Positions 6,255 to 46,328 of a stretch of DNA of 64,000 bases are shown one piece after another. The position numbers were made by a program, and so were the translations under genes. The notes below the pieces were generated by a model. The model was not told where the DNA came from. It did not search any database and was given only the letters and a program-made list of their open reading frames with translations. Source of the stretch: Paragordius varius (taxonomy: Eukaryota; Animalia; Nematomorpha). The stretch spans positions 12,710,001 through 12,774,000 of the forward strand of contig OZ176051.1 of the NCBI GenBank assembly GCA_964247055.1, in the 5' to 3' direction. The number at the start of each line of letters is the position of its first letter. The stretch's first letter is position 1.

Positions 6255-9200
6255 TATATTATATGCTCTCTTTATCCATTTAATCAGCGGAATTGGTTGA
6301 AACAGCCTAAATTTACATGGGTGTGCTATATATGTATTGCCTGCATGAAACAAGATATATTTTGCGCATGGAAGCACAATTTAGGATTAATGTAAAATTC
6401 TGAGTTTAACTAAATATAGTTTTTCTCTTAAATGCAGGACTTATTTAATAATAAATAAATTGAAGGATTATAGTTGCGCATGACAGTGTAGATAATAATT
6501 TAATATAGCCTTTTTTAGCATTAGTAAACGTATCAAATGGATATGAATAGAATCTGGAGTCTATTACAAAAGACAACCACACATACCTTGATTTGTTTAT
6601 AACACAGTGATTATATGTACAACAATTACGTATTTTACAATTATCAAATGATTTTCTTAGATTAATTTTAGTAAAAAGGATGGTAGTCTTTTGAAAAAGA
6701 AATTGTCTTTATATTTTACGTTATGACCGTATAATTTCAATTTTACTGGCAATCGACAATATTTAAAAAACTAACAATGTATAATACATTGTATAAAGGT
6801 GAAGTAACTTATTGATTTCAAAAATGGTCGTATGTTATACTAAAAATATTGATTTAATTAAATATTTTTTAGAAAATAAAATAGTTTTTTTACAGACCGG
6901 GGGATCAATAAAGGAGCCAATTTAATAATGATTTAATTACCTTTGGCCCATTTATATATGAGGAAAAAGTATGATGGGATTTGAATAAGGCTGCACGTTG
7001 AACTAAAAAATTTCTTGGCATTTAATTGCTCAAAAGTCTATTTTTAGGGACATGTAGACGAACATAGGTCTAATTTATAAAAATAACCATAACCCTTGGC
7101 ACTTTTTCAAAGAGATGGTTTACAATATTTTTAATCTGGTTTTCAGTATTGTTACTATGTCAACCACTATATAATACAAAATTTCTACACAAACCCTTAC
7201 TTGATAAAGTCTTCAGAAAAGAAGGATATTGAGTTATTTTAATAAAATTATTTTTTGAATTATAATCGCATTAGATAATATTTGACGTTGTAGTCATTCT
7301 AAATAACTTTTGGTAATCAAATAAATTAATAATTTATTTTACAATATTTTTCGAATAATGATATTAACAAACGTAAATGCTTTTTACCATATTTTAACAT
7401 TTAAAAAATTATTTACAATTTTGGAATTCAAATTCACCCTCAATATTCTTAAACAATTCGAATTGACCAAAAATAAATTATGGGTTTTCGGGCTAATATT
7501 ACTCATCATAAATATAAAATATATCTTAATGGCATAGTTTATTATTTTTTCAGTATGATTTTAATTTACAAAATTTTATTTTTTAAAAATATAATAAAAT
7601 ATAGGTAGTTTTCAATTTTAAAAACACATAATTTATTTTGGGTTATGAATTGTTCAAGGGTGAATATTAAATTAAGGCTGTCTTAGTTATATTCCGCCGA
7701 TTTGATAATGAATTAAGTTTGAGATTCGCCTTTAAATTCATTGAATCAGTCTTAATAATTTTGAAATAATTAAAAGTTTTAAATTAATCAACTCAATAAT
7801 GTCATATTAAATGTACAGTATAAAAATTGATTATTTTTTCTAAAAACGACCATATATATTTATGAATCATTTTGATGTACAGTCATGTAGACTTTATATT
7901 GTTAAAGATTTACTTTTTTTCGTTAATTGGGTATTAATATTTGGTAAAGAATATAAAAACAAGAGCAATATGGTATTACCATATCATATTCTTTAAAACA
8001 GTAAAAAATGAAGGGGAAGGGCGTCGGAAATCTTTAGTAAAAAAATAAAAATACACTAACTACTAACCCTTCACTTAAATTTGATGAATATTTTGTAATG
8101 TTAAATTTTGAGAATATTATAGCATTTTATGTTAACATTTGAAATATTGTTGTTACGTATTTAGATGCGGAATTTTGTGGGTTTTTATCTTTAATAATTT
8201 AATAAATAGTAAAATGGGTACTATTTTTCAACATGATAAATACCTGTATTAATCGATATTGGTATTATTTTATATAGTTGTTATTAGTAATTAAAATACA
8301 GGTTATATATTAGTTAAAATTTAAGTAGATTTTGAATTGTTTTTGTTTTTATGTTATTCATTGTCAATTTTTATGTATTGACATTTTAATCAGGTAAAAA
8401 TTGCGGTTTCTAAATTTAGTCAAATTTAATTTTTTTGTTTTTTATTTAATATTGTTAATTGTAATTAATTACATATTGTAATTTTAATAATTACAGGTGA
8501 AAATTGTGGTTTTTAATAAATTTAGTCAAATTTAATTTTTTTGTTTTTTAGGATTTGCATTGTTAATTGTAATTAATTACTACATATTGGAAATTTTAAA
8601 AAAACAGGTAAAAATGGGGGTTTCAAATTTTTTTATTGTTAATTGTAATTAATTACATATTGTGGACATTTTAATAATTACAGGTAAAAATTGCAGTTTT
8701 TAATAAATTTAATAAAAATTGAATTTTTGTTTTTTAGGATTTGCATTGTTAATTGTAATTAATTTATTTGGTCATTTTAATAAATACAGGTAAAAATTGC
8801 GGTTTTTAACAAATTTCAAATTTATTTTTTTTATTTTGTATCATTGTTAATTGTAATTAATTACTACATATTTTGGACATTTTAAATACAGGTGAAAATG
8901 GCAGTTTTTTAAATTTAACATTTTTTGTATCATTGTTATTTGTTATTAATTAATAAATATTTGGACATTTAAAAACAGGTGAAAATTGCGGTTTTTAATA
9001 AATTAGTAAAATTTTTAATGTTTTGTTCAACTTCGCTAATTTATTATGTATTATATATTTTTGATACATTGATATCAGGTAAAAATTACTATCATTTGAA
9101 TAAATTAGCAAGGTTGAACAAAACATTAAAAATTTAAATTTTATTTAAAACCGCAATTTTCACATGTTTTTTAAATGTCGAAAATATTTGATAATTAATA

Positions 9201-9473
9201 ACTAATAACAATGATACAAAAAAAATTAAATTTGAATTTTGTTAAAAACCGCCATTTTTACCTGTATTTTTTAAAATTTCCAAATATGTAGTAATTAATT
9301 ACAATTAACAATGTTAAATAAAAAACAAAAAAATTAAATTTGACTAAATTTAAAAACCGCAATTTTTACCTGATTAAAATGTCAATACATAAAAATTGAC
9401 AATGAATAACATAAAAACAAAAACAATCCAAAATCTACTTAAATTTTAACAAATATATAACCTGTATTTTAAT
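6255..9473 (+). repeat. Arm A of a 3219-bp near-perfect inverted repeat
   Basis: Reverse complement of 10989-14207. The coordinate sum is 20462 at both ends and at the internal checkpoints (6901/13561, 7880/12582). Substitutions seen at 6366/14096 and 6422/14040. Confidence 0.95.
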
Positions 9474-9916
9474 TACTAATAACAATATAAAATAATACCA
9501 ATATCGATTAATACAGGTATTTATCATGTTGAAAAATAGTAATTATTGAATTTAATTATAAACCATAAATAATAAAATACCCATTTTACTATTTATTAAA
9601 TTATTAAAGATAAAAACCCACAAAATTCCGCATCTAAATACGTAACAACAATATTTCAAATGTTAACATAAATTGCTAAAATATTCTCAAATTTAACATT
9701 AAAAATATCCATCAAATTTAAGTGAAGAGTTAGTAGTTAGTGTATTTTCATTTTTTTACTAAAGATTTCCGACGCCCCTCCCCTTCATTTTTTACTTTTT
9801 TAAAGAATATGATATGGTAATACCATATTGCTCTTGTTTTTATATTCTTTACCAAATATTAATACCCAATTAACGAAAAAAAGTAAATCTTTAACAATAT
9901 AAAGTCTACATGACTG
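7880..9916. mobile_element. 2037-bp foldback-type element with long modular TIRs, TA-flanked, CAGT termini (Tc1/mariner-like ends)
   Basis: TA|CAGTCATGTAGAC...GTCTACATGACTG|TA. About 580 bp of each arm is inverted, followed by ~80-110-bp CAGGT(A/G)AAAATTGCGGTTT repeats (7 in the left arm at 8391-8976, 3 inverted in the right arm at ~9150-9375). No ORF. Confidence 0.8.
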
Positions 9917-10331
9917 TAAATTAAATAATTTAAAATATAAATTGTGTTATCAATTTACACCTCTACTTTTGCTGACAATAGTAATTACTAAAAAAGCAAA
10001 TTTAAAAAATAGAGCGGTCATTTGAATGAAGAGTTGTCTTTAGGTTTTTAGATTTTATCTGGATATTTCTGCATATTCAATTATACATACTGAAAACAGT
10101 TTGCTTTTAACTAATTTATTCAACTGAACCTTAAAGGAGAAAACGTAAAAAATAAAGATTAATATTTTCAAACACCAGTGTACTTTCTATATCTTTATTT
10201 TTTTGAATTGTCATTAAATTGCCAAGTAGGTAATATGCATATATGATAAATTATGTATTTTAATTGTAAACCTATTTATAATGTTTTTAAATATAAATTA
10301 TTTTTTTATTTACAAAAGGATTACAGTTTAA

Positions 10332-10904
10332 CACTTGGATACAACACACTCATAGTCCTTCGATTCAAATTGGGGTAGTTGGATACCCCAGGCCTGTTAA
10401 AAATTAAATTCTTTAAAAAATATAGAAGGAATCAGAACCATGGCAAAATTTTGCACTTATCTAACATTAATAAGCCGAATTATATAAAAAATATTATTCA
10501 AAAATACTTGATATTACTTATTTTAAGCTAAAACCAAAAGGTAAAATTTCGTCAACCTGACATGTGTCAAATTGTAAACTTGAAAAATTTTACAAACTAA
10601 ACAGCTTTTTCTATTTCTATCAATGTTAGATGTAATTTATATAAAAAATTAGCTTTAGTTTTACCCTTAAAATATAGAACGATATTTTGCAAAAAAATTT
10701 TAAAATAAAAATGGCGTCGAAGTAGTTTGAGATGGAGCTTTTTTTCAAAACAAAATTTTATCAAGGTATTTTGGCATATTTTTATAATATTTATCAGGAT
10801 AGAAGCATAAATTAAAATTGGGACCGTTTCCTTCAGTAGTTTTTTAAAAATTTTAATTTAAATTTTGTCTGGGGTATTTAGATACCCCAATTTGAATCGA
10901 AGTG
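10332..10904. mobile_element. TTAA-flanked (piggyBac-like) MITE, 573 bp
   Basis: TTAA|CACTTGGATAC...GAATCGAAGTG|TTAA; inner inverted repeat TTCGATTCAAATTGGGGTA and a GGGGTA-nnnnn-ATACCCC palindrome at each end. Confidence 0.75.
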
Positions 10905-10988
10905 TTAAAATTGTTCACGCACCCATATCTATATAAAAACTATAAATACCTTAAAAAAGTACAATAAAAATTAATATTATACAAACAT

Positions 10989-13900
10989 ATTAAAATACAG
11001 GTTATATATTTGTTAAAATTTAAGTAGATTTTGGATTGTTTTTGTTTTTATGTTATTCATTGTCAATTTTTATGTATTGACATTTTAATCAGGTAAAAAT
11101 TGCGGTTTTTAAATTTAGTCAAATTTAATTTTTTTGTTTTTTATTTAACATTGTTAATTGTAATTAATTACTACATATTTGGAAATTTTAAAAAATACAG
11201 GTAAAAATGGCGGTTTTTAACAAAATTCAAATTTAATTTTTTTTGTATCATTGTTATTAGTTATTAATTATCAAATATTTTCGACATTTAAAAAACATGT
11301 GAAAATTGCGGTTTTAAATAAAATTTAAATTTTTAATGTTTTGTTCAACCTTGCTAATTTATTCAAATGATAGTAATTTTTACCTGATATCAATGTATCA
11401 AAAATATATAATACATAATAAATTAGCGAAGTTGAACAAAACATTAAAAATTTTACTAATTTATTAAAAACCGCAATTTTCACCTGTTTTTAAATGTCCA
11501 AATATTTATTAATTAATAACAAATAACAATGATACAAAAAATGTTAAATTTAAAAAACTGCCATTTTCACCTGTATTTAAAATGTCCAAAATATGTAGTA
11601 ATTAATTACAATTAACAATGATACAAAATAAAAAAAATAAATTTGAAATTTGTTAAAAACCGCAATTTTTACCTGTATTTATTAAAATGACCAAATAAAT
11701 TAATTACAATTAACAATGCAAATCCTAAAAAACAAAAATTCAATTTTTATTAAATTTATTAAAAACTGCAATTTTTACCTGTAATTATTAAAATGTCCAC
11801 AATATGTAATTAATTACAATTAACAATAAAAAAATTTGAAACCCCCATTTTTACCTGTTTTTTTAAAATTTCCAATATGTAGTAATTAATTACAATTAAC
11901 AATGCAAATCCTAAAAAACAAAAAAATTAAATTTGACTAAATTTATTAAAAACCACAATTTTCACCTGTAATTATTAAAATTACAATATGTAATTAATTA
12001 CAATTAACAATATTAAATAAAAAACAAAAAAATTAAATTTGACTAAATTTAGAAACCGCAATTTTTACCTGATTAAAATGTCAATACATAAAAATTGACA
12101 ATGAATAACATAAAAACAAAAACAATTCAAAATCTACTTAAATTTTAACTAATATATAACCTGTATTTTAATTACTAATAACAACTATATAAAATAATAC
12201 CAATATCGATTAATACAGGTATTTATCATGTTGAAAAATAGTACCCATTTTACTATTTATTAAATTATTAAAGATAAAAACCCACAAAATTCCGCATCTA
12301 AATACGTAACAACAATATTTCAAATGTTAACATAAAATGCTATAATATTCTCAAAATTTAACATTACAAAATATTCATCAAATTTAAGTGAAGGGTTAGT
12401 AGTTAGTGTATTTTTATTTTTTTACTAAAGATTTCCGACGCCCTTCCCCTTCATTTTTTACTGTTTTAAAGAATATGATATGGTAATACCATATTGCTCT
12501 TGTTTTTATATTCTTTACCAAATATTAATACCCAATTAACGAAAAAAAGTAAATCTTTAACAATATAAAGTCTACATGACTGTACATCAAAATGATTCAT
12601 AAATATATATGGTCGTTTTTAGAAAAAATAATCAATTTTTATACTGTACATTTAATATGACATTATTGAGTTGATTAATTTAAAACTTTTAATTATTTCA
12701 AAATTATTAAGACTGATTCAATGAATTTAAAGGCGAATCTCAAACTTAATTCATTATCAAATCGGCGGAATATAACTAAGACAGCCTTAATTTAATATTC
12801 ACCCTTGAACAATTCATAACCCAAAATAAATTATGTGTTTTTAAAATTGAAAACTACCTATATTTTATTATATTTTTAAAAAATAAAATTTTGTAAATTA
12901 AAATCATACTGAAAAAATAATAAACTATGCCATTAAGATATATTTTATATTTATGATGAGTAATATTAGCCCGAAAACCCATAATTTATTTTTGGTCAAT
13001 TCGAATTGTTTAAGAATATTGAGGGTGAATTTGAATTCCAAAATTGTAAATAATTTTTTAAATGTTAAAATATGGTAAAAAGCATTTACGTTTGTTAATA
13101 TCATTATTCGAAAAATATTGTAAAATAAATTATTAATTTATTTGATTACCAAAAGTTATTTAGAATGACTACAACGTCAAATATTATCTAATGCGATTAT
13201 AATTCAAAAAATAATTTTATTAAAATAACTCAATATCCTTCTTTTCTGAAGACTTTATCAAGTAAGGGTTTGTGTAGAAATTTTGTATTATATAGTGGTT
13301 GACATAGTAACAATACTGAAAACCAGATTAAAAATATTGTAAACCATCTCTTTGAAAAAGTGCCAAGGGTTATGGTTATTTTTATAAATTAGACCTATGT
13401 TCGTCTACATGTCCCTAAAAATAGACTTTTGAGCAATTAAATGCCAAGAAATTTTTTAGTTCAACGTGCAGCCTTATTCAAATCCCATCATACTTTTTCC
13501 TCATATATAAATGGGCCAAAGGTAATTAAATCATTATTAAATTGGCTCCTTTATTGATCCCCCGGTCTGTAAAAAAACTATTTTATTTTCTAAAAAATAT
13601 TTAATTAAATCAATATTTTTAGTATAACATACGACCATTTTTGAAATCAATAAGTTACTTCACCTTTATACAATGTATTATACATTGTTAGTTTTTTAAA
13701 TATTGTCGATTGCCAGTAAAATTGAAATTATACGGTCATAACGTAAAATATAAAGACAATTTCTTTTTCAAAAGACTACCATCCTTTTTACTAAAATTAA
13801 TCTAAGAAAATCATTTGATAATTGTAAAATACGTAATTGTTGTACATATAATCACTGTGTTATAAACAAATCAAGGTATGTGTGGTTGTCTTTTGTAATA

Positions 13901-14207
13901 GACTCCAGATTCTATTCATATCCATTTGATACGTTTACTAATGCTAAAAAAGGCTATATTAAATTATTATCTACACTGTCATGCGCAACTATAATCCTTC
14001 AATTTATTTATTATTAAATAAGTCCTGCATTTAAGAGAATAACTATATTTAGTTAAACTCAGAATTTTACATTAATCCTAAATTGTGCTTCCATGTGCAA
14101 AATATATCTTGTTTCATGCAGGCAATACATATATAGCACACCCATGTAAATTTAGGCTGTTTCAACCAATTCCGCTGATTAAATGGATAAAGAGAGCATA
14201 TAATATA
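10989..14207 (-). repeat. Arm A' (inverted copy of 6255-9473)
   Basis: Direct reverse-complement comparison; includes a truncated inverted copy of the foldback element ending at 12582. Confidence 0.95.
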
Positions 14208-14405
14208 TGGTAATTCTTATACTTTTTTGACGAAAATGATATTATTATTACCATATAGCTCTTGTTTTTCCATTCTTTACCAAATATTTATATCCATTTA
14301 ACAAAAGATAATAAATTTTTTATAAAATAAAGGATACAACACTGTAAATTTATACATTATGAATGAGGGTTTTTGTACTTTAGAAAAAATACTGTTTTTT
14401 AGCAT
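14206..14405 (-). repeat. Segment C: inverted copy of 15927-16126 (200 bp)
   Basis: Coordinate sum is 30332 at both ends. It carries only half of the MITE that is intact at 15988-16215. Confidence 0.9.
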
Positions 14406-14411
14406 TTATGT

Positions 14412-15927
14412 TGTTTGTATAATATTAATTTTTATTGTACTTTTTTAAGGTATTTATAGTTTTTATATAGATATGGGTGCGTGAACAATTTTAACACTTC
14501 GATTCAAATTGGGGTATCTAAATACCCCAGACAAAATTTAAATTAAAATTTTTAAAAAACTACTGAAGGAAACGGTCCCAATTTTAATTTATGCTTCTAT
14601 CCTGATAAATATTATAAAAATATGCCAAAATACCTTGATAAAATTTTGTTTTGAAAAAAAAGCTCCATCTCAAACTACTTCGACGCCATTTTTATTTTAA
14701 AATTTTTTTGCAAAATATCGTTCTATTTTATTTTAAGGGTAAAACTAAAGCTAATTTTTTATATAAATTACATCTAACATTGATAGAAATAGAAAAAGCT
14801 GTTTAGTTTGTAAAATTTTTCAAGTTTACAATTTGACACATGTCAGGTTGACGAAATTTTACCTTTTGGTTTTAGCTTAAAATAAGTAATATCAAGTATT
14901 TTTGAATAATATTTTTTATATAATTCGGCTTATTAATGTTAGATAAGTGCAAAATTTTGCCATGGTTCTGATTCCTTCTATATTTTTTAAAGAATTTAAT
15001 TTTTAACAGGCCTGGGGTATCCAACTACCCCAATTTGAATCGAAGGACTATGAGTGTGTTGTATCCAAGTGTTAAACTGTAATCCTTTTGTAAATAAAAA
15101 AATAATTTATATTTAAAAACATTATAAATAGGTTTACAATTAAAATACATAATTTATCATATATGCATATTACCTACTTGGCAATTTAATGACAATTCAA
15201 AAAAATAAAGATATAGAAAGTACACTGGTGTTTGAAAATATTAATCTTTATTTTTTACGTTTTCTCCTTTAAGGTTCAGTTGAATAAATTAGTTAAAAGC
15301 AAACTGTTTTCAGTATGTATAATTGAATATGCAGAAATATCCAGATAAAATCTAAAAACCTAAAGACAACTCTTCATTCAAATGACCGCTCTATTTTTTA
15401 AATTTGCTTTTTTAGTAATTACTATTGTCAGCAAAAGTAGAGGTGTAAATTGATAACACAATTTATATTTTAAATTATTTAATTTACAGTCATGTAGACT
15501 TTATATTGTTAAAGATTTACTTTTTTTCGTTAATTGGGTATTAATATTTGGTAAAGAATATAAAAACAAGAGCAATATGGTATTACCATATCATATTCTT
15601 TAAAAAAGTAAAAAATGAAGGGGAGGGGCGTCGGAAATCTTTAGTAAAAAAATGAAAATACACTAACTACTAACTCTTCACTTAAATTTGATGGATATTT
15701 TTAATGTTAAATTTTGAGAATATTTTAGCAATTTATGTTAACATTTGAAATATTGTTGTTACGTATTTAGATGCGGAATTTTGTGGGTTTTTATCTTTAA
15801 TAATTTAATAAATAGTAAAATGGGTATTTTATTATTTATGGTTTATAATTAAATTCAATAATTACTATTTTTCAACATGATAAATACCTGTATTAATCGA
15901 TATTGGTATTATTTTATATTGTTATTA
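14412..15927 (-). repeat. Segment B': inverted copy of 9477-10987
   Basis: Reverse complement of the spacer between arms A and A'. It differs by small indels (a 1-bp homopolymer change near 14660, a 3-bp insertion near 14717). Contains the MITE copy at 14495-15071. Confidence 0.9.
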
Positions 15928-15987
15928 TGCTAAAAAACAGTATTTTTTCTAAAGTACAAAAACCCTCATTCATAATGTATAAATTTA

Positions 15988-16215
15988 CAGTGTTGTATCC
16001 TTTATTTTATAAAAAATTTATTATCTTTTGTTAAATGGATATAAATATTTGGTAAAGAATGGAAAAACAAGAGCTATATGGTAATAATAATATCATTTTC
16101 GTCAAAAAAGTATAAGAATTACCATAGAGCTCTTGTTTTTACCATTCTTTACCAAATATATATACCCATTTAACAAAAGATATAAATTTTTGATAAAATA
16201 AAGGATACATGACTG
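15988..16215. mobile_element. 228-bp TA-flanked MITE, short relative of the foldback element
   Basis: TA|CAGTGTTGTATCC...GGATACATGACTG|TA; shares the subterminal ATATTTGGTAAAGAAT..AAAAACAAGAGC.ATATGGTA with 7880-9916. Confidence 0.75.
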
Positions 16216-16654
16216 TAGTCATTGTAATTATATACCAGGAAAAGTATTTAATATGTTTGCAAACATTTATTGATTAAATGACATCGAAATTAAGCATATT
16301 TAATTATTAAGGAAAGAATTGAATATTGCATATTTATTTATAATGGTCTGGGACTAACATCACATCCATTCAAGCAAGCAATCTGTTCAGTAGTAAATGA
16401 TATTATACGGATGGAATTAAAAAATAAATCATCACACACAGCCATATTTTTAAAACTTGATTTTTCAATTGGATTGTAGATGAAGAAATAAAAAGTTAAT
16501 GTTGAAATAATTAAAGCTTAAAAAAGTATGGCTGTCTTTATAAGGAAATAGTTTTTATATTTTTACATGTTGTTGTTTGATATCAATTTTACTGTCAAAT
16601 ATAAGAAAACTTTGTTTAAACTTAAACATTATTTAATATAATCCTTATTTATCA

Positions 16655-16928
16655 CAGTAAAAATTGAAATTATACGGACAAAAGGTACAAATATAAAGAC
16701 AAAATTATCTAAAATACAGCCATACTTTTTAAATCTATTTTTGTTAAAATATAACACTTTAAAGGCCAAAGTATCGAATAGAGATGGATATTGGTAATAC
16801 AATCAATTACATATTTTACGATTGTTATTAAATGTTTATAGGATAAATTAGGGTTTGAAAAGGTATGCTTGTCTTTTAAAAAAATTTTGTATTTTTACGT
16901 TTTGTCCGTATTATTTCAATTTTTACTG
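16655..16928. mobile_element. CAGTAAAAATTG-type MITE (Tc1/mariner-like)
   Basis: TIR CAGTAAAAATTGAAATTATACGGACAAAA... / ...TTTTGTCCGTATTATTTCAATTTTTACTG|TA. Confidence 0.75.
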
Positions 16929-17649
16929 TAAATAGTTATTTATCAAGTAAGAAGTCCTTAACTTTTATAGTGGCCTAATTTTTAGACATTAATTTTATGG
17001 CTATTGTTTTTAATTTGTGCAATACAATAAAAATAACTCAGGGCTTATTTGATTAAATATTTTAAAATTATTGATAAAAAACTAAAAATAATTTATAAGC
17101 TTTTGGGGACGAATTTACTAAAAAAATGATGAGTGTACGGCTGTTTAAATAAAAAAGAATCAAATGGCTTTTTTATAAACAGTATGCCCATCAATGTTGA
17201 ACGATCAACAATACACTAGCGTATGGGTTACAGACAAAAAATGATTGAATGTACATTTTTTCTTCTATCGTATTACATTTAAATTTTATTAGTTATAAAT
17301 AAAATTTGTATTATATCATACGCTACTGTATGACCAACTGGTCAACACTGATGTCAATCGACCACATTAATATACATCCTCCATAAAAAGACCTTTAATT
17401 ATAGGATAAATGTGATAATTTTATTCAAATTAAACTTAATCACAGCAAAAAGTACCTTCAAAACGACATCATCATCCTTTGTTAGTTTGTAGATGACTTG
17501 AGCACCCGAACTTTTTTTTTAACTTCGATCCCGTCAAATTTTTCATTATGAATATGGGATATTTTCTTTTCCATTAACTTTTGTTTATTTTTCATGATGG
17601 CTAAACATTATAATTTTTTTTGATAATTTCATATAATATTGGCACTTTA

Positions 17650-17861
17650 CAGTAAAAACTCAAATTATACGGACAAAACGTAAAAATATAAAGACAAATA
17701 TATTTTTTTGAAAAGACAACCATAAGCCTTAATTTCTATATTATAATTTGTAGTTTAAAACAGTGAGTATTCAAAAAAATCAAGATATATGGTTGTCTTT
17801 TAGAAAAATATATATGTTTTTAAATTTTTACGTCTTGTCCGTATAATTTTAATTTTTACTG
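17650..17861. mobile_element. CAGTAAAAATTG-type MITE, complete with TA TSD
   Basis: TA|CAGTAAAAACTCAAATTATACGGACAAAACG...CGTCTTGTCCGTATAATTTTAATTTTTACTG|TA. Confidence 0.85.
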
Positions 17862-18137
17862 TAAGTTATGTTCGCTTTTAAGGTTGCGAGTAGCCCATTT
17901 ATAACCTCCTGCGAATTCTTTCAAAAGTACCAGAAAATTTATTAATAAATTTATTAATAAATGGCAAAACAAAAATAAAATAAACAATTTTTATTTTATA
18001 TTATACTGTTGGCGTTAATTTCTTTTCAATATATTAAAATTAATTTTGCGCTTTTTTTTAACAAATTCGGAGTTTGGAACCGGATGGGATTCAAATTTAA
18101 ATTTAAAAATGATTTTAAGATTATATCCTCTTGTATA

Positions 18138-20209: not shown

Positions 20210-20510
20210 TAAAAGCTAGTAAATTGCATTTGTGTATTATAATACTGGTATACGGACAAAACATAAAAATATAAGGACAAATATTTTTTATAAAAGACAA
20301 CCATACTTTTTTAAACCTTAATTTTCCAAAAATAACTTATTGTTTTTAAACTATTAAGTCTGAGGTTATTGGTAACACAATCCAATTAATTTGCAGTTTA
20401 AAACCAGATATATAAAAATTATTCAAGATTTAAAAACATGGTTGTCTTTTAGAAAAAAATATTTGTCTTTATATTTTACGTTTAGTCCGCATAATTTTCA
20501 TTTTTATTAT
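18138..20510. mobile_element. Cluster of further diverged copies of the same MITE (18138-~18410, ~18690-18917, 18967-19192, ~20245-20510)
   Basis: Each carries the ATACGGACAAAACGTAAAAATATAAAGACAAATA.../ACAACCATACTT TIR motifs in inverted orientation; outer ends are partly eroded. Confidence 0.65.
18537..19295 (-). CDS. Exons 1-2 of a candidate orphan secreted protein (19295-19214, 18668-18537)
   Basis: Exon 1 MSRFLVNLNKMVLSIFVLASIAVMVRS resembles a signal peptide and ends at donor G|GTCAGT (phase 1). Exon 2 follows acceptor ATATATAG and is open in the matching phase: DCIVKTKHGNLNSKKHVFHDMDITIKPNALGSCDGDLYFNAGKL, donor A|GTAATA. Downstream exons are uncertain. Confidence 0.4.
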
Positions 20511-20659
20511 AATTCCTAAAATATGCCCTAGATATAAATTAAAATTGAATTATTTAGTTTTCGTCCTATGCTCGACTGTGATAAACAAGGTAACCTCTGT
20601 ATAATTTCATGCAAAAACGCTAAGAAATCAACCTAAAAAAAGCCAATCGTCTTACCTGT

Positions 20660-21008
20660 TAATAACTGGGGACGACAATGTAAAGGTAACGGTAAATAAA
20701 TTTATTATATATTGTATATCACAAACACAATGCTTTATATCATGATCTATATATATATATATATATATATCTAAGATTTAGGTTTAATGTATTCACATAT
20801 ATCAAGGTGAGATGTTTGCTTATATCCAATTATCTCAAGGTATAATAATAATATTCACAAGTGGTGGGGAGGTTATAATAATATAAAAATAGTACACAGA
20901 TAAGTTAATAGGTTCATGTACTAATATATAACGAATGTTGTTTGTGTGGTTAATCTAATCGTGTAATAACAGGTCTATTCAAATTAGCCTGTCAGTTACA
21001 CTCTAACA
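20660..21008 (-). repeat. 3' LTR (349 bp)
   Basis: Direct repeat of 24927-25296 with about 8 substitutions plus indels; contains a (TA)n tract. Confidence 0.95.
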
Positions 21009-21026
21009 TCACTTCCCCCCCCCCCT
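21009..21026 (-). promoter_or_regulatory. Polypurine tract overlapping the integrase stop codon
   Basis: The - strand reads AGGGGGGGGGGGAAGTGA immediately before the 3' LTR (TGTTAGAG). Confidence 0.8.
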
Positions 21027-24000
21027 AACGAAAGCGGGCAGGTTTCTGCCGACTTCTTGTCGGGTACCGTCGTTCTTGTTTTTTAGCGGGGGAGTAGATT
21101 GTCTCAGGTTTCTGGGTATTATCATTATTTGGACTTTCGGCTGTCGGAGTATTGGTTCGATTTCGTCCCTTGAATTGATCGTGTTTGGTTGCATTTCAGC
21201 GATTGTTCCAACATCCGTGGCAGTGGTTACCTCCTCCTCATTTGTGTTGCTGGCAGTGGTCGGCTGTGGTTGTGGTTGTTGTACTATTTGGTCAGCGTGT
21301 TTCCTCACAACTTTATCTCGGTCCTTGTCCCATACCTTGTATGAAAATAACCCTGTACGGTCCGTAATCTCTCCGGCGCGCCACCCTGGACTTAATTCAT
21401 TTTTAATCATTACCTGGTCATTCATGGCAAACTGCCGTCGAGAGGTCGGTGCATCTAACAATCTCTCCCTACTATTTAACCAGGTTAAGGGCGTATGGGG
21501 GGTACGCTTGAACATTAACTGGGCCGGGGTTTCTTTCGTTGTTGAGTGTATAGAATTTCTATACGCCCATAAGCTAGTGTTAAACGCTTCGGGGGTGGAT
21601 AACCCATTGTTTTTTATTCTTTTGTATTTATTTTTTATTGTACCTACTAACCTTTCTACCATCCCATTACTCTTAGGGTGGTATGGGGTAACCTTAATAT
21701 GTTTCACCCCTAACGTACTTAATGTTGACGTAAAGTACTCGTTACTGAAATATGAAGCGTTATCGCTCACAATCTCTCTTGCAAAGCCAAACCTTGCAAA
21801 CGTTTCTTCTAATTTGTGGATTATTTTGGCTGCGGTTACCTTTTTCAAAATAAATCCTTCTGCCCATTTCGAGGCACTATCAATTATCAACAACCAATAC
21901 AAACCGTCTACCGGTCCGGCTATATCAATATGCAAACGCTCGCACACAGCAACATTATGATCCCACTGATACGTGGAATTCTGAGTATCATTCGGCCTAC
22001 TACGTTGGCACGATTCGCATTGACTACTGGCTTTAACCAGGTCATTTTCTAATTCTGACTAATAACACGTAAATCTGGCCATCGCTTTCATGGTCTCTAC
22101 GTTGTTATGCCCGCTGTGTAGGTATCTCACCACCTCTTTTTGGAGGGGCTTCGGAATTACTATCCGATCATTTAAACTTAATAAGCCATATTGATATGCT
22201 AACTCGTCTTTACGGTTTACAAACTTTTATAATTCTGGAGAACTCCAGTCATGGTTGTTTAACGCTTTAATTACTTATTGTAATACTGAATCTAATGCGG
22301 TTTCTTTTCGAATTTCATCTCTGCTTAACCGCACATTATGACAATTCAAAAATCTCAAATATCTGGTAACCGCATAATCTTCATCATAGGCAAAATCGGC
22401 CATCTCGATAAATGATCAGCTCTATTTTGAACCCCTTTTTGATGACTTATTTCAAAGTCGTATTCATTTATCATATTAATCCACCTTAGTATTTTAGCAT
22501 TATGTATCTCTTTTAAATTTCGACTATTTATTAACTTTACTAAAGGTAAATGGTCAGTTAATATTATAAATTTTCTACCATATATGAAATTATGAAACTT
22601 TCGTAACGCAAATAATATTGCTTTTAATTCCTTCTCTATAGTGGAATAATTCCTTTCAGCGTTGCTACACTTTTGTGAGGCATACGCTATCGGTAACCTT
22701 TCACTATTAACTTCATGACTTAGAATACATCCATATCCTAAATCTGACGCATCAGTTTCTATTATCAATTTCCTATTCGAATTATATGGTGTTAAAAACA
22801 CTTTTTCGCTTAACAAATTCTTAGCTGCTAACCAGCTTTTCTCATGTTTCTCGGTCCAACACCACGTATTCATACTAGTTAATTCATGTAAGGGGCCGAC
22901 TATCATTTGTAATTTTGGTATAAAGCGTTCATGAAATGTCAAAAAACCTAAAAAACTACGTAACGACTTTTTATCTACCGGCCTTTTTCTTAATTGCTTT
23001 GATTTTGCTTTCACACGGGCTTATACCCTTTTTCGATATTTCAAACCTTAAATAGTTTACTGATTCTGCGCTTATCATTATTTTATCTTGTCTTAATTTA
23101 AATCCGGCCTTATCGAGACGACTTAATACGTTATTTAAATTGTTAATGTGCTCATTTTCCGTCCTAGCAGTCACTAGGACGTCATCTAAATATACGCAAG
23201 TTCCCGGACTTTCAGCCAGCACTTGTTCCATCACTCTTTGGAAGATGATAGGTGCCGTGGCCGGTCCAAACGGCATGCGTTTGTATCTAAAAAAACCTTA
23301 TGTGTTGAGATAGTTAACAATTCTTGACACTCCTCTGCCACTGGCATCTGGAGGTAAGCATCTTTTAAATCAATTTTCGTGATTGTGATACCTTCACCTA
23401 TTTTCGTCACCAACTCATCAAACGTGGGGATTATGTGGGAGTCTTCTTGCAACCACTTATTAATCGTTACCCGAAAATCACTACATATTCTTAATTCGCC
23501 ATTCGGTTTAAGTACATTAACCGTAGGCGTGGCCCATGTCACAGGTGTGGTGTTACGATCAACCGGTTCTAAAATGCCTAACTTTTCTAGCCTCGTCAGC
23601 TCTTTCTCCACCTTTTCTCTTAATGGAAAAGGCACCCTGCGACATGGCCATACTTTCGGGATCGCATTCGCTGCAATTTACAGGGTCCTTATAACACCCT
23701 AACTTATTTTCGAATAAATTTTTAAAATTTTCACAAATTCATTCAATTTAAGATAATTAACTTTAACCTGTGGCATCTCAATCTGGAATTTCGCCATCCA
23801 GTCCAGTCCACAGATAAGCGGGGCCATCCCCATCGTTTTGAATAGGACACATATGTCCCCGACCATTTGTTTACCATTTACCTGGACCTTGACACTTGCT
23901 GTCCCCATAGCACTGCGGTATTGTTGTACGATTTTACTGGGGGTGTCGGACTCAGCTTGGGTTTACCGATTTGGTCCCATGTGGCAAAGTTTAATACACT

Positions 24001-24900
24001 AATGTCCGAACCGGTATCATAGATAAAGTCTTTTTTTAACCCGTTTATTACTAGTGTTATCAGTAAGGGAGTTAGCGCCTTATGACCCACGTTAACTTCC
24101 TTCAAAAATTGCCTATTGAAGTTGGTCTTTGTCTTTTGGCCACACACATTCTCGCAAAATGGTTTAGCTTTCCGCATTTGTTCCAGGATCGTCTCCAGGC
24201 TGGACACTTGTTGGGTGGGTGTGTGGTGCCGCAATATTTACATGTAGGTTTTATTATTGTTTGTCTATTGGATTTATTATGTTGTAACCGATTGATATTA
24301 TTATTGCTGTTACTGTATCGATTGCTATTATTACTATTATTGTTATTCTGTAATCCAGCCTCAGACTCATGTGCTAGTGCGAGATCTACGATTGTTTCTA
24401 GTGGAACTACCGTTTATCAAAGCATCTGGATACCTGGAAGGATATCCATCTCTAGTTGAGCCTGTCGCAGTCCTCTTACGAATGCATCACGAATACGTTG
24501 TTCTATGGCTTCAGTAAATTGAGCTTCTTCAGCTCCTATCTTGACACGCTCAAGCAATTGGGTAAAACTTTCACCCTCGTTGCGTACCAAACTATAAAAT
24601 TCAAAACGACTTTGGAATTTTGATTTTGTCGGGTTGAATATTTTTTTGCCTGTTTCCGTGATCTCCGCCCATGTGGCGTCTTTTATTTTTTTGGATAGGT
24701 GTTGGTTAATCTTTCGTACTATCATGAATCCGCCATATGCTAGTATCGTTGATTTAAGCGTTCTTTCGGTTACTGGAGTATCCTTTGCCTCGAGTACGTT
24801 GCTAATATACTCGAGGTACTCTTCAAATTTATTATTATCGATTTTTCTATGGCTAAATTCGCAATACTAGTATGAGGAGCTGTGGTGTTCATTGGTTCGT
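21009..24900 (-). pseudogene. Disrupted gag-pol (track ORFs 24417-24725, 23878-24234, 23231-23635, 22971-23276, 22355-23014, 21009-21947)
   Basis: Conserved retroelement motifs are split across several frames. Confidence 0.9.
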
Positions 24901-24916
24901 CTGCCATATCTTGTTT

Positions 24917-24925
24917 TGGCCACCA
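24917..24925 (-). promoter_or_regulatory. Primer-binding site TGGTGGCCA (tRNA-Ile-like)
   Basis: Lies 1 nt inside the 5' LTR on the - strand and starts with TGG. The tRNA identity is from recalled tRNA-Ile(AAU) 3' ends and was not searched. Confidence 0.6.
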
Positions 24926-24926
24926 A

Positions 24927-25020
24927 TAATAACTGGGGACGACAATGTAAAGGTAATGGTAAATAAATTTATTATATATTGTATATCACAAAAACAATGC
25001 TTTATATCATGATCTATCTA

Positions 25021-25061
<41 letters not shown>

Positions 25062-25296
25062 AAGATAATTAGGTTTAATGTATTCACATATATCAAGGTG
25101 AGATGTTTGCTTTTATCCAATTATCTCAAGGTATAATAATAATATTCACAAGTGGTGGGGAGGTTATAATAATATAATAATAGTACACAAATAAATTAAT
25201 AGGTTAATGTACTAATATATAACGGTTGTTTGTGTGGTTAATCTAATCGTGTAATAACAGGTCTATTCAAATTAGCCTGTCAGTTACACTCTAACA
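24927..25296 (-). repeat. 5' LTR (370 bp)
   Basis: Direct repeat of 20660-21008 with a longer TA/TCTA microsatellite. Confidence 0.95.
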
Positions 25297-26559
25297 CCTG
25301 TCAAGCATCCTTATAACCAACATTAACCTTTTTAAAAAGATGCATATTAACGCTTGGAATCATTTGTGTATACCTATTAGAGTGATCTAGGTTTGACGGA
25401 AAAATCGTTAAAATTATAAAACCATCCACTTATGTCATGCTGTCTACATTTTTCCTTTGTAAACTGCCACTCATAATTTGGTGCATACCTAATAATATTT
25501 TAAAATTTAAAAATTATTTAATTTTAAACAAGCGTGTCGTCAATTATCCTATTTTGAACCGAAGCACATTTATTGTCTCTTATTCAAAATACATGATATA
25601 TGCATAAATATTAAATGACAGAATTATTAAACAGCAATCCTAGCCCTTCCCGGATCTAAAAAATATATTAACCAACTTATTTTATTTTTTTTAATAAAAA
25701 AACAAAAAAATAAACTCCACTTTGTTACTATATTAATGAATCGAATAAAAAATAATCTTAACTCAATGTGAATATCATTGAGAAAATTATTGATTCTCCT
25801 CCAAATTGAAATTATATGGACAAACCGTAAAAATATAAGGACAAATATTTTTTTCTAAAATGCAACCATACTTTTCTATACCTTGATTTTTTTAAAAATA
25901 ACCCATTATTTTAATTCCAAATTTATAAATTGATATGTATATTGGTAACACAATCATTTACATATTTTACGATCGTTATTAAATGAGTTTAATAATATAA
26001 ATTAAGGTTAAAAAAAGTATACTAGTCTTTTGGAAAATAAAATTCCTTTATGTTTTTACGTTTTGTCCGTTTAATTTTTATTTTTATTGTAATATCTTAA
26101 ACGGATATTAAACTATCACAAAATTGGGTCCTTTTTTACGCGGGAATCTAAATTTTTATAAATTAAGGTGAATAATTTAGGGCTATACGGCACTTTTAGG
26201 GTCACGGTTGGATTATTACTGATTTACTCTTAGCTGTTATGATGTAACATATAACCGAGTTTGGAAATGGAAATTTTCGACAACTGTTTTGATAAGTTTG
26301 AAATTATTTCTATGTTCTAAAGTATTAAAATTAACATGAGTTTTTATAGGCCCTGTTTGTAGAATGAATGGTAAGGAGATTAAGAAAAATAAAATGCCTA
26401 ATTCATATTTCTATTGAGTTTTATAAAGGTTTTACTCTTAAAAGCGCATATTAGAGCTCGTGAAAGCTATCTTTCACACCTTTTGGAGAGGGGGGCGAAT
26501 TCGAGGAAGTGATTTGAGATTTAATTTTAATTTCTACTCCCGCACACCATATATAATTA

Positions 26560-26845
26560 CAGTGAAAATTAAAATTATACGGACAAACATAAAATTTTTA
26601 AAACAATTTTTTTTTAAAAAACAATCATACTTTTTAAAATTTGATTCATTTAAATAAAACTCATCCTTAAAAGAGTATGCAATAGAGATGTAGTTGGTAT
26701 AATACAATTAATTACATATTTTACAATTTTAACTAAATAGTATTTATATAGTGAAAATTAAATTTTTAAACAGTATGATTGTCTTTTGAAAAAAATATTG
26801 TCTCGATATTTTTACTTTTTGTCCGTATAATTTCGATTTTTACGG
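26560..26845. mobile_element. CAGTAAAAATTG-type MITE (another eroded copy at ~25803-26092)
   Basis: TA|CAGTGAAAATTAAAATTATACGGACAAAC...TTTTGTCCGTATAATTTCGATTTTTACGG|TA. Confidence 0.75.
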
Positions 26846-27049
26846 TATTTTCAAGTTGAATGGAACTATCTTTATAACATTATCTAAGAAACTAGCTTAA
26901 AACTGTGAACAAGAAGCAAAATGCTAATTCTGTTTACAGGATTGAATATGAGGAAGGGAACAACAAGTAAATATTGGTGTTATATAGCTCCAATTAAAAT
27001 ATCTAATTTAATGGCTATGAATTTTATTTTTTCATTTATATCTCAAAAT

Positions 27050-30000
27050 TATTACTTATAACAATTCTTATTACTTATAACAATTATTATAATTATCATT
27101 GTTATCTATTTATTTTCCAAGTTTATTCTATCTTTTATCAGTTTTTCTCATTCATTCAAAAATGCACGAAATTACCTTAGTATTCCAATTCAATAGGATT
27201 CGTATTTTATTTTATTTCATTTTTACTAATTGATATATATTTATGTATTTCTTTTTTAATTATTATTATTATTATATTTTTGGTTAAAATTTTTGATTCT
27301 TTTTTAGATTATTATTATTATTATATTTTTGGTTAAAAATTTTTTTTTGATTCTTTTTTGTTGCTTTACATATTAGTTACTATATATCTTAGTGTTTATT
27401 ATCTATATTATTCTTCTTTATTGTATTTTTGTTTTTTATGAGTGTTTTTTGTAAGGCGTGCAGGCCCCCGGCCAGTCGCTGCACAGAAGTAGGGGCCAAT
27501 AGGGATAAGGAAGGTTGTAGAATGTGTTTTGCCAGTATAAATGTTGGTTCGTTAAAAAGTAAGTTATATGATTTAGTTGAAACTATGAGGGTAAAAAAAG
27601 TAAATTTTTTGTGCATTCAGGAGACCAGATACCGTGGAAATGGTACTAAGACGTTAGAGGGTAATTATAAAATGTTTTATTCAGGTTCTACGGATGGTTA
27701 CTCTGGGGTTGCCATAATAGTGTGCCCAAGATTTGCCAATCAAGTAATTGAGGTTAGACGTGCTGACAGTAGAATCATAAGTGTCGACCTATTGTTAAAT
27801 AAGAGGGTTTTTACTATCTTTAGCGTTTATGCCCCCCAGATAGGTTTAACTAAACCGGAGAAAGATAAATTCTATGATTTGTTAGACGCAGAAATGACTT
27901 CATTAACGAAAGACAGAGAAATTATATTTTGTGGTGATTTCAACGGGCACGTGGGACAAAATAGGAGAGGTTTTGAGCCTTGGCACGGCGGAAAAGGTTA
28001 TGGGGTTATAAATGAAGAAGGAGCTAGTTTATTAAGATTTGCCCAATCTTATAACTTTGCTACAACAAATACTTTTTTTACGAAAAGGGATAGCCACTTA
28101 ATTACCTACGAAAGTGGAAATAAGAAGTCACAAATTGATTATATTCTAGTGCCACGAAAGTCTTTAAAGTTTGTTTTGGACTGCAAAGTGATACCTAACT
28201 TGCAGATTAGCACACAACACAATTTAATTATGTGTAAATATATGACAGATATACCAATAAATGCCAAAAAGCCTAAGCTTATAGCGCCGAAGGTAATTAA
28301 ATGGGATTCTCTAAGAAACAGTAAAGAAAGATTTGTAGAAACGGTAGGCATACTAGACAGGAACAGTGATCCAGAAAGTGTTTGATCTCAGGTGGCAAAA
28401 AAAATAAGAGAGGCGGGAGTTAAGGTGTGCGGAATGAAAGGTGGCAGAAATCAGGTTTATAGAGAGGCATGGCTGAAAGACGAAAAAATAATTCTGAAAT
28501 CGCGAGAGAAAAGAAAAGCTTTTAAAATGTGGAGGTTTACCCACCAAGCAGAAGACAAGGAAAAATATAAAAGGATTAATAAGGAACTTAAAAGGCTTGT
28601 AAGATTGGTCAAAAAAGAAAAGACGGCATCATTATATGAAGAGTTGAACAGTAAGCAAGGTCTAAACAAAGTTTTTAAAATTGCTCGACAAAGACACAGA
28701 AGAAAGCTGGACTTGCCCCCTTACGCGACAGCTATTAAAGATAAAGGCAAATTACTCGTTGAGGAAGCGAAAATATTGAAAAGGTGGAAAGAATATTTCC
28801 AGGATCTTGAATTGGGCGTCAGTGAAACAAGTTTACCCGAAACACCAGATTATAAATCTGCGCATATTGAAAGTATAACAAAAGAAGAAGTCCAGGCTGG
28901 TTTAGAAGAGATGTCAATAAATAAGGCTGCAGGTCCAGACGATATTAACATAAACTGTTGGAAAATATTGTCAGAGAAAGGTATTGAATTTTTAGCGGAT
29001 ATTTTTAATAATGTAGTTACTACAGGTATGATACCAACCGAATGGAAGGAGAGTTTCACTGTTCCCATTTTCAAGGGTAAAGGAGATATTAATGATTGTA
29101 ATAATTACAGAGGGCTAAGATTGATGTCGCATACAATGAAGTTATTTGAGAAAGTACTAGAGAAAAGAATAAGAAAAATGGTTAGTATAGAGGGTAATCA
29201 ATTTGGTTTTATTCCAGGAAAATCCACCATTGATCCAATTCACGCAGTAAGAAGGCTAATCAAGAAGCATATAGAAATGAAAAAGGAGTTGCATGGTATT
29301 TGTATTGATATTGAAAAGGCATTTGACAGAATACCTCGGAGCACAATATGGTGGAGCTTAAGACGGAAAAAGGTCCCTGAAAGTTACATAAAGATTTTAA
29401 AAAGCATGTACGAATCACACCAAACCAAAATTAAAACACACCAGGAAATATCAGGTCCTATTAAAATAAACGAAGGGGTCTATCAGGGGTCTGCAAGCAG
29501 CCCGTTATTATTTATAATATGCATGGACGAAATTTCAAAAGAAGTAGGACAACATGATGGCTGGTATTTTCTTTATGCAGACGACATAAAAGTGCTGTCC
29601 GACGAGTTGCATGAATTAAAAGAATCTGTGGGTAAATGGATTGATGTGTTACGACGATGCGGATTAAAAGTTAACAAAAAGAAAACGGAACTGATAAATT
29701 TTGGCGGGAAAAAACGAGAAATAGAATTAGAAGAAGGGTGGGTATTAAAAGGCCAGGAAGAATGCAAATATTTAGGAACGATATTAGCAGCTGATGGATC
29801 TTTAACACTTGATATTAATTTAAGAATTCGAAATAGTTGGGCAAATTACAAAAAGATCTCAAGTGTTTTGTGCGACAAAAATATTGACTTAAAAGTAAAG
29901 GGTAAGATTTACAGTGCTGTTGTACAACCAACAATGATGTACAACTCACAGACATGGGCAATAAAGAAATCAGAAGAGAGGTACTTTGAGGTTACTGAAA

Positions 30001-30361
30001 TGAGAATGCTTAGATTGATGTGCGGTGTAACGAGGAATGACAAGGTGAAGAATGTCTACATAAGAGGAGGCACGGAAATCAAATCGGTAACGCAAAAAAT
30101 GATGGTAAATCGTTTAAGATGGTTTGGACATGTGGAAAGAAGAGATAAAAATTACATTGGTAAAAAGATTGATGATTATATTGTAAAAGGCAAGAGGGGA
30201 AAAGGGCGCCCTAAAACGCGATGGATAGATACAGTTAAGAGGGACATGGCAAAACTGAACCTAAAACGCGAAGACGCCTTAGACAGGGTTCTATGGCGAA
30301 ATAGTTTACGGATATGACCGCTCGAAAGAGTGATATCATATAATGTAATTATTATTATTAT
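27050..30361 (+). mobile_element. Near full-length RTE-clade LINE (~3.3 kb)
   Basis: APE-RT ORF; (ATT)n tail at ~30346-30362; candidate 11-bp TSD TATCTCAAAAT at 27039-27049 and 30362-30372. The 5' boundary is less certain than the 3'. Confidence 0.8.
27438..30317 (+). pseudogene. RTE endonuclease + reverse transcriptase ORF with one in-frame TGA (28383-28385)
   Basis: EN motifs: LCIQET, VYAPQ, GDFNGHVG, QIDYILV. RT motifs: QFGF..GKST, DIEKAFD, YADD. RTE C-terminus LRWFGHVERR..GRPKTRW. Track ORFs 27429-28385 and 28392-30317 are in the same frame. Confidence 0.93.
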
Positions 30362-34348: not shown

Positions 34349-37791
<3,443 letters not shown>

Positions 37792-41642: not shown

Positions 41643-42696
41643 CTAGCGTGAATCTCATGCTTCTGGGGGGGGGAGTTCGAATGCTATACATATGATAGAT
41701 ACTCCTTACTCAGCATCTATCATCAAGGAAACGCTTGACTAAAATTTTTGCCTTTTAACAGGCAATACGAAAAATCTTTCTCGAATTTTTACAGTCTCAT
41801 ACCATGGGCAAAAAAATACAATCAAAAAAATATTTTTGTGGACTTTGTTTTTTTTTGAAAAAATGGCATTTTACGGGGGGAGCGGGTAAAAAGAGGGCCT
41901 AAATCAAAAAAGTGACTCGACTATGTTCGGCGCAATCGAAAATAAGTAAACAAAAATCATATTTGAAATTGAATGGTCCAACACGTTCTCCAAAAAATTG
42001 ACTTAACCCATTTTTCACACGGGGTGGGCCCAAACTGGGGACCTAATTCCAAAAAAGGGCGAAGCTATTGTCGGGGCATTCATTAATGATTAAATTTTTT
42101 CGATGTTTGGATTTGATTGGGTTCACCGGTTTTCCGGAAACAGATCACAAAGTTATATGAAAAATCAGTTTTTAGCGGGTAGCTCCTTACCCAGCAGCTA
42201 TCATCAAATAAACGGTAGACTAAAATTTTTGCCTTTTAACAGGGAATACGTGGAATCCATATAGAATTTTTACGGTCTCATACCTAGGGCGAAAAATCGA
42301 TTTAAAAAATTATTTTTGTGGACTTTGTTTTTTGAAAAAGGTGGCATTTTACGGGGGGAGCGGGTAAAAAGAGGGCCTAAATCAAAAAAGTGGCTCGGCT
42401 ATGTTCGGCGCAATCGAAAATAAGTAAACAATAATCATATTTGAAATTGAATGGTCCAACACGTTCTCCGGAAAATTGTCTCAAAGACACGATTTTTGTG
42501 GACTTCTGTTTTTTAAAAAAACCCGTTTTTCATACGGGGTGGGCCCGAACTGGGGGCCTATTTCAAAAAGGGCGAAGCTATTGTCGGGACATTTATTAAT
42601 GATTATATTTTTTCGATATTTGGATTTGATTGGGTCTACCGGTTTTCCTGTACCAGATCACAAAGCCAGCATTTTCCATTTTTATAAATATATAGA
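41643..42696 (-). mobile_element. 1054-bp family A Helitron with two tandem internal units
   Basis: A|TCTATATATTTATAAAAATGG at 42696; ends GAGATTCACG-CTAG|T at 41643; no TSD; reverse complement of the 1-1294 family. Confidence 0.85.
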
Positions 42697-45600: not shown

Positions 45601-45800
45601 GTGTGTGATGAATTAACTATAAATTCACCTGTCACCAAATATTATAATTTTATACTGCATTAACCTAATCAGAAAGAACTTCCCTTTTTTCAGGTATTTT
45701 TATATAGATATGATATCTAATCAGAAAATATGTTAATGAATTTGATCACAATATATATTTAATTATATTGTATATATGCATGATGATAAATGCTATTTAA

Positions 45801-46328
45801 CATTTGGCAACAATACATTCATTTCAGTCCTTCGATTCAAATTGGGGTAGCTGGATACCTGAGGCCTAAATTAAATACCATGGAAGTAATAACTATGGCA
45901 AAAGTTTGCACTTACATAAAATTGATGACCGAATAATAAACATTTAATTAAATAACCTTGAATATTACTTATTTTATGGTTAAACCGAACGTAAAATTAA
46001 GCCAACATGACATATGTGCATTAGATAAATATATAAATAATGCATAATATTTTTTATGAATTTTGGATATATTTTATAAAAATTATTTAATTTTAGCCTT
46101 AGAATCAAGTTAAGATATTTTGCAAAAATGTTGTAAAAGAAAAATGGCGTCGAAGTAGTTTGATATGGAACATTTTTTTAAAAAAACTATATTTTATTTG
46201 AATATTTCGAGACTTATTTATATAATTTTTATAGAAGCATTAAATTGGGACTGCTTCAGTATTTTTTTAAATAATATCAACTTAAATATATGGAATATAT
46301 TATTATCCCAATTTGAATCTTCGAAGTG
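45801..46328. mobile_element. TTAA-flanked MITE, diverged copy of 10332-10904
   Basis: TTAA|CATTTGG...AGTCCTTCGATTCAAATTGGGGTAGC...CGAAGTG|TTAA. Confidence 0.75.

Follow-up and report, generated by a model that had tools for sequence, protein, structure and literature searches.

Within a 64,000-nucleotide stretch of the genome of the nematomorph Paragordius varius (GenBank assembly GCA_964247055.1, contig OZ176051.1, positions 12,710,001 to 12,774,000 of the forward strand; hereafter the window, GC content 27.8%), a segment of about 4.9 kb is present a second time inside its own locus, inverted and with its parts in permuted order. An earlier note on this DNA had proposed that the segment was closed into a piece of extrachromosomal circular DNA (eccDNA), which then re-entered the locus from which it came. 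How did the extra copy arise, and is a circle needed to explain it?

Anatomy of the duplicated span

Self-BLAST of the window together with a read-out of the junctions gave the assembled order L a (3 bp) b, J1, a′, J2, c′ x′ b′, J3, c R, where L and R are the flanks, a, b and c are segments, a prime marks an inverted copy, x stands for six bases and J1 to J3 are the new junctions. The parts are as follows.

6255–9473, plus strand: segment a, resident copy, 3,219 bp; contains the left arm, the centre and part of the right arm of a foldback element
9474–9476, plus strand: three single-copy bases separating a end from b start, a reciprocal breakpoint pair
9477–10987, plus strand: segment b, forward copy, 1,511 bp
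10988–10989: J1, where the ends of b and a meet tail to tail; a single base is unassigned, or else there is 1 bp of overlap and a slip of 3 bp
10989–14207, minus strand: inverted copy of a; two substitutions, 111 and 167 bp from its J2 end
14206–14207: J2, c end to a start, with a 2-bp TA overlap; a junction of the tandem-duplication or circle-closing type
14206–14405, minus strand: inverted copy of c, 200 bp, identical
14406–14411, minus strand: x, six single-copy bases; the original connection of b to c through x, and the space between b end and c start, a reciprocal breakpoint pair
14412–15927, minus strand: inverted copy of b, 1,516 bp; five bases longer than the forward copy through three indels
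15927: J3, where the starts of b and c meet head to head with 1 bp of overlap
15927–16126, plus strand: segment c, forward copy, which runs on into the right flank

Segment a (6255–9473) pairs with the reverse complement of 10989–14207 at 99.94% identity with two substitutions, b (9477–10987) with that of 14412–15927 at 99.67% with three indels of 1, 3 and 1 bp, and c (15927–16126) with that of 14206–14405 at 100%. Inverted matches of 1.5–3.2 kb at more than 99.6% identity are far above chance, and as a sequence in the assembly the structure is confirmed. The extra DNA amounts to 4,939 bases, with three new junctions and five differences between the copies, and the reverse complement of 10989–15927 reads b-x-c-a. 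Bases 9474–9476 are missing from the extra copy, x (14406–14411) occurs once, and the native b-x-c join is kept only within the extra block. Each of the four ancestral joins persists in the derived allele, which would leave an empty allele with no junction of its own. The a-b join is ancestral, since the left arm of the foldback element (7880–9916) holds the same join unbroken, and so is the c-R join, which is crossed by the hairpin of a 228-bp miniature inverted-repeat transposable element (MITE; 15988–16215). The block order given in the earlier note, including the permuted and inverted extra copy, is thus reproduced, and these two elements back its ancestral order a-b-x-c. Its statement that a plain inverted duplication cannot yield the assembled order is upheld, and the scars that it listed, namely a shared TA, 3 bp lost, about 6 bp lost and a 1-bp overlap, were found at J2, a/b, b/c and J3 respectively.

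Junctions and breakpoints

The overlap is 2 bp (TA) at J2 and 1 bp at J3, and at J1 base 10988 is either unassigned or there is a 1-bp overlap with one 3-bp repeat unit lost. Random joins in the region have a mean overlap of 1.0 bp and reach at least 2 bp in 26% of cases; the overlaps of 0–2 bp are therefore at chance level, and there is no microhomology signal. The most informative feature of the structure is that the four inner breakpoints form two reciprocal pairs, the end of a and the start of b being 3 bp apart and the end of b and the start of c 6 bp apart, indicating that both sides of two breaks were retained. A distance of only 3 bp between the end of a and the start of b would arise with a probability of about 0.0014 if the site were drawn at random from the span. 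The insertion site lies about 200 bp from one end of the span, as would happen by chance in 8% of cases.

Permuted order and circular intermediates

Enumeration of the paths that use the same joins gave six segment orders, two of which amount to a tandem duplication in which one of the b copies is inverted. A simulated crossover between the inverted b copies converts one of these two into the assembled order without adding a junction, and the product equals the window save at the five sites where the copies differ; homologous recombination within the donor locus thus supplies the inversion needed. If a break captures two linear fragments, 2 of the 8 possible arrangements have a permuted order. 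Two histories free of any circle rebuild the window apart from the five differences, one by tandem duplication, a 1.5-kb inversion and a crossover, the other by a staggered break with pieces of the opposite strand ligated in line, and a circle is not required for this structure. The earlier note had taken circular permutation as the signal of a circle, a claim that these two routes leave unsupported here; where a copy lies in or beside its source, permutation is not evidence for a circle, because an inverted-copy crossover or linear capture yields the same order.

Duplications through circular intermediates have been diagnosed at non-tandem acceptor sites, where simple events cannot produce the order (PMC7450558). 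The present structure has two of their features, the permuted block order (the reverse complement of the insert being b-x-c-a) and the short overlaps and small indels (0–1, 2 and 1 bp, with 3 and 6 bp lost), and lacks the one that makes them diagnostic, as the acceptor lies inside the donor. The study of chromoanasynthesis in C. elegans (PMC4199376) was considered as a precedent for a circle, and the word 'circular' does not occur in it.

Differences between the copies

Of the five differences, two are substitutions in a and three are indels in b, the forward copy being the shorter each time, which agrees with the two substitutions and small indels reported in the earlier note. Each lies 111–313 bp away from a junction by which the copies can be told apart, and no difference occurs in the inner 3.05 kb of a. 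The clustering at junctions has a P of 0.002–0.009 for five sites, and of 0.03–0.04 with close pairs counted as one event (post hoc). Error-prone repair near ends is expected to produce such a distribution. As to the strand alternation or single-strand deamination signature of breakage-replication/fusion, the inserted pieces are only two, both on the same strand, and one of the differences is a G-to-A (or A-to-G) change at a CpG. At the indel at 9689 the left arm of the foldback element agrees with the inverted copy, the other MITE copies being too diverged to polarise sites. The indels in b are located in short runs, and A/T runs of at least 9 are scarce in the window, with 6 seen against 21–36 expected, as opposed to 40 seen and 31–40 expected at a control locus of Gordionus montsenyensis. 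This deficit may come from consensus under-calling or be a trait of the species, and it bears on any indel-based claim in this genome. As the differences cluster at the junctions and long A/T runs are depleted, they are neither a clock nor proof that the structure is real, and the earlier contention that they argue against an artefact is not supported.

Proposed breakage and end joining in a single event

With less than even confidence, we tentatively favour a recent, real and local duplication by breakage and end joining, with no need of a circle, the leading version being one event; its occurrence in vivo, its single-event nature and the route of duplication are what we infer from the assembled sequence. 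A staggered break would have opened the top strand at b|c and the bottom strand some 200 nt off, where c ends. The bottom strand would then have been cut back by about 4.9 kb leftwards and released as two adjacent pieces, c′x′b′ and a′, and these, or equivalent linear fragments of the sister chromatid, would have been joined between the two broken ends and filled in. In a bookkeeping model the join of top (L a b), bottom (a′), bottom (c′x′b′) and top (c R) rebuilds the window bar the five differences, with every piece in the 5′-to-3′ direction and each strand of the ancestral duplex used once. The one-event model explains the inversion, the position at the source locus, the 3-bp tiling gap and the insertion site near the end of the span. 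This reconstruction demonstrates consistency but does not establish the model as true, and the circle model yields the same sequence.

Capture in one event is supported by the two reciprocal breakpoint pairs with their gaps of 3 and 6 bp, by overlaps of 0–2 bp that match random joins, and by the grouping of the copy differences close to the junctions, which error-prone repair would produce. The inserted pieces tile at their origin with a 3-bp gap and no overlap, and cover 4.7 kb to the left and 0.2 kb to the right of the b|c break. Both this tiling and the derivation of the pieces from within 10 kb of the break end are found in breakage-replication/fusion, where tiled insertions adjoin resected break ends, tiling is said to be incompatible with random template switching, and some insertions reach 20 kb (PMC12807874).

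Several points weigh against this reading. The insertions of PMC12807874 are mostly short (median 184 bp), often have more than 2 bp of overlap and alternate between strands, and according to the supplement of that paper the capture of cleaved flaps is not shown experimentally. Five other orders and several histories have identical junctions. The clustering of the copy differences would be equally explained by polishing with short reads of the other homologue, which anchor uniquely only near the junctions. The more specific claim, that the duplication is inherited and arose in one event by the serial joining, within the home locus, of both strands of a single broken duplex (or of a tethered circle of the same stretch), seems to us unlikely.

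Alternative explanations

A stepwise history is a minority possibility that we take seriously. A 4.9-kb tandem duplication would have formed J2, inversion of the 1.5 kb of b, within one of the copies or in one of the homologues, would have formed J1 and J3 with the loss of 3 and about 6 bp, and a crossover between the inverted b copies would have flipped the spacer without adding a junction. The simulation described above recreates the window apart from the five differences, and both reciprocal breakpoint pairs would simply be the two ends of one inversion. Orders with shared junctions and different orientation are also known from structures in which duplications flank an inverted triplication (DUP-TRP/INV-DUP; PMC11293582), but three events are needed at one locus within 0.1% divergence or less, and such local clusters in cancers have been argued to be mostly single-event (PMC7025897). 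The same study reads local n-jumps as copy-and-paste events, which is in line with microhomology-mediated break-induced replication or fork stalling and template switching (MMBIR/FoSTeS), where three template switches would copy b-x-c, then a, and then return to b. The product would be the same, and if synthesis proceeded from right to left the differences would come soon after the putative switches. The route requires, however, that the a copy stop no more than 3 bp from where the b copy begins (a chance of about 0.0014), whereas independent switch points are expected to leave large gaps or overlaps at the origin; the junction overlaps are no longer than random where above-chance microhomology is called for, and tiling has been argued to be incompatible with MMBIR (PMC12807874). 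We regard this route as very improbable, and the equal standing that the earlier note had given to three-step template switching is not borne out, since one switch has to fall within 3 bp of the landing of another. The circle of the earlier note is in our view quite unlikely. In that proposal a copy or the excised form of a-b-x-c would have been circularised through J2 (4.94 kb), linearised again at a|b and inserted inverted into a break at its own b|c. This accounts for a ending 3 bp from where b starts, but not for the inversion or for the site near the segment end. For a free circle in a genome of 200–290 Mb the probability of landing by chance in its own 4.9 kb is about 2e-5, so any circle must have been a tethered local event, and a tethered circle differs from linear capture solely in the order of J2 formation and the cut at a|b. 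Re-entry of a circle by homology would instead produce a plain tandem duplication. The order, the 0–2 bp scars and the small deletions do match published cases of circular intermediates (PMC7450558).

An assembly or read chimera, either as two fold-back paths through a heterozygous 1.5-kb inversion that were joined at J2 or because another of the six orders is the true one, is judged unlikely. The assembled path is exactly L a b a′ followed by c′ x′ b′ c R, that is, both fold-back walks through an inversion heterozygote, and the identity of the inner part of a and the depletion of long A/T runs fit this explanation, as does the finding that nanopore ligation libraries produce inverted chimeric reads (PMC13141652). 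Three clean junctions without N and two reciprocal pairs are on the other hand hard to obtain from one chimeric read, reads longer than about 10 kb would cover the whole structure, and the overlaps of amplification chimeras peak at 7 nt (PMC9984789) as compared with 0–2 here. A chimera of multiple displacement amplification was rejected, as the inverted junctions have overlaps of 0–1 and 1 bp where 5–8 nt would be expected (PMC9984789). Exact-protein look-ups of three ORFs (open reading frames) of the window found no independent contig.

Mobile elements and genes in and around the span

The elements that overlap the duplicated span are the following.

7880–9916: non-autonomous foldback element, about 2.04 kb, with TA on both sides and CAGT-type ends
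10324–10913: MITE-like element within b, with relatives at about 1824–2251 and 45796–46333
15988–16215: 228-bp hairpin MITE with TA on both sides; the first approximately 137 bp are common to the foldback end

The outer 0.6 kb of the foldback arms are 98% identical, 44 gap columns aside, which suggests recent activity or arm-to-arm conversion, and the inner part holds tandem repeats of about 90–106 bp. We take this element to be of the Tc1/mariner type from the features of such ends. Because the first approximately 137 bp and the TA-flanked CAGT-type ends are shared, the foldback element and the 228-bp MITE appear to be a long and a short version within a single non-autonomous family. None of the breakpoints (6255, 9473/9477, 10987/15927 and 16126) is located at the element ends 7880, 9916, about 10324, about 10913, 15988 or 16215. 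The breakpoint at the end of c is in the stem of the 228-bp MITE, about 9 bp from the loop. Two of the four break sites are within hairpin elements, as predicted by their coverage of 56% of the span, and the idea in the earlier note that the foldback element possibly provoked the event is not supported by the breakpoint positions. Alternative transposition of Tc1/mariner-type elements is a system with which the locus can be compared, as it has TA-flanked hairpin elements in the span and a TA overlap at J2. Transposition as the cause of the duplication was nevertheless rejected, since no junction is at an element end.

At J2 (14206–14215) the joined sequence fits the other arm of the MITE two bases further than the broken arm, and the break is at a stem mismatch close to the MITE loop; both may be due to chance. 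A second family of TA-flanked hairpin MITEs, with ACAGT-type ends, has many copies (16654–16931, 17647–17864, 20249–20520, 25803–26101 and 26555–26850), and a decayed copy is found inside segment a at about 6620–6780.

No gene was found in the duplicated span, which has only short AT-rich ORFs that were not searched against databases, and genes with tiny introns could escape such an inspection; nor was there any RNA match in Rfam. With no gene found, there is no functional consequence to test.

Elsewhere in the window, 20660–25296 on the minus strand resembles a long terminal repeat (LTR) retrotransposon, with 91% identical direct repeats (20660–21008 and 24927–25296) around broken RNase H-like and integrase frames, and 27429–30317 resembles a long interspersed nuclear element (LINE) with a stop between the endonuclease and reverse transcriptase frames. 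A GC-richer repeat family with several direct and inverted copies of 80–98% identity is present at 1–1222, 2250–2774 and 41681–42697. The LCMT1 gene is located at 34349–37782 in five aligned blocks, its introns amounting to about 2.5 kb in all, compared with a gene of 22.6 kb in G. montsenyensis. The best match of an LCMT1 exon is to Gordionus sp. m RMFG-2023 with 61% identity, the next matches having about 48% or less, and ORFs of 164 and 182 aa at this locus continue from exons into probable introns. The low identity points to a nematomorph other than G. montsenyensis as the probable source, and the unamplified nanopore method used for that species therefore does not carry over to this assembly. 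Long low-complexity ORFs of 584 and 350 aa are found at 49182–50936 and 58750–59802, the second of which starts with a PDZ fragment, and they may be exons of one scaffold-protein gene.

Comparison with known systems

The structure is a local complex rearrangement of a known class, and behaves like a low-copy-gain local cluster of three junctions made by end joining. Like the local n-jump clusters (PMC7025897) it is phased on one derivative, local, mixed in its inverted and non-inverted junctions and open to several solutions, but it spans only 5 kb, comes from an invertebrate assembly and not a tumour, and has two reciprocal breakpoint pairs. With breakage-replication/fusion (PMC12807874) it shares end-joined pieces that tile with a tiny gap and adjoin the break; the pieces here however measure 3.2 and 1.7 kb where the published median is 184 bp, lie on the same strand and return to their own locus, with overlaps of at most 2 bp. 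Permuted blocks, overlaps of 1–2 bp and short losses are also seen in the circular-intermediate duplications of human cSDPs, cattle KIT, tilapia vasa and a yeast gene cluster (PMC7450558), whose copies are non-tandem (0.09–58 Mb away or on another chromosome) and at least 22 kb in size, whereas here the copy is inside its source. The conformers of DUP-TRP/INV-DUP (PMC11293582) likewise have identical junctions and a segment orientation that varies via inverted repeats, so that only long molecules separate them; the present locus differs in having no triplicated segment, three junctions instead of two, and none of these inside a pre-existing pair of inverted repeats.

Implications

If real, the locus is a compact and fully resolved local duplication with three junctions in a barely studied animal phylum. 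The methodological lesson is that circular permutation loses its value as evidence for a circle where the copy lies in or beside its source. Should the single-event reading be true, this would be a natural case in an animal, on the 5-kb scale and at base resolution, of break-end fragments or eccDNA re-entering their own break, a step that has been called undemonstrated in the literature. Many gap-free tiled inverted duplications in the P. varius genome, if found, would point to a recurrent repair route.

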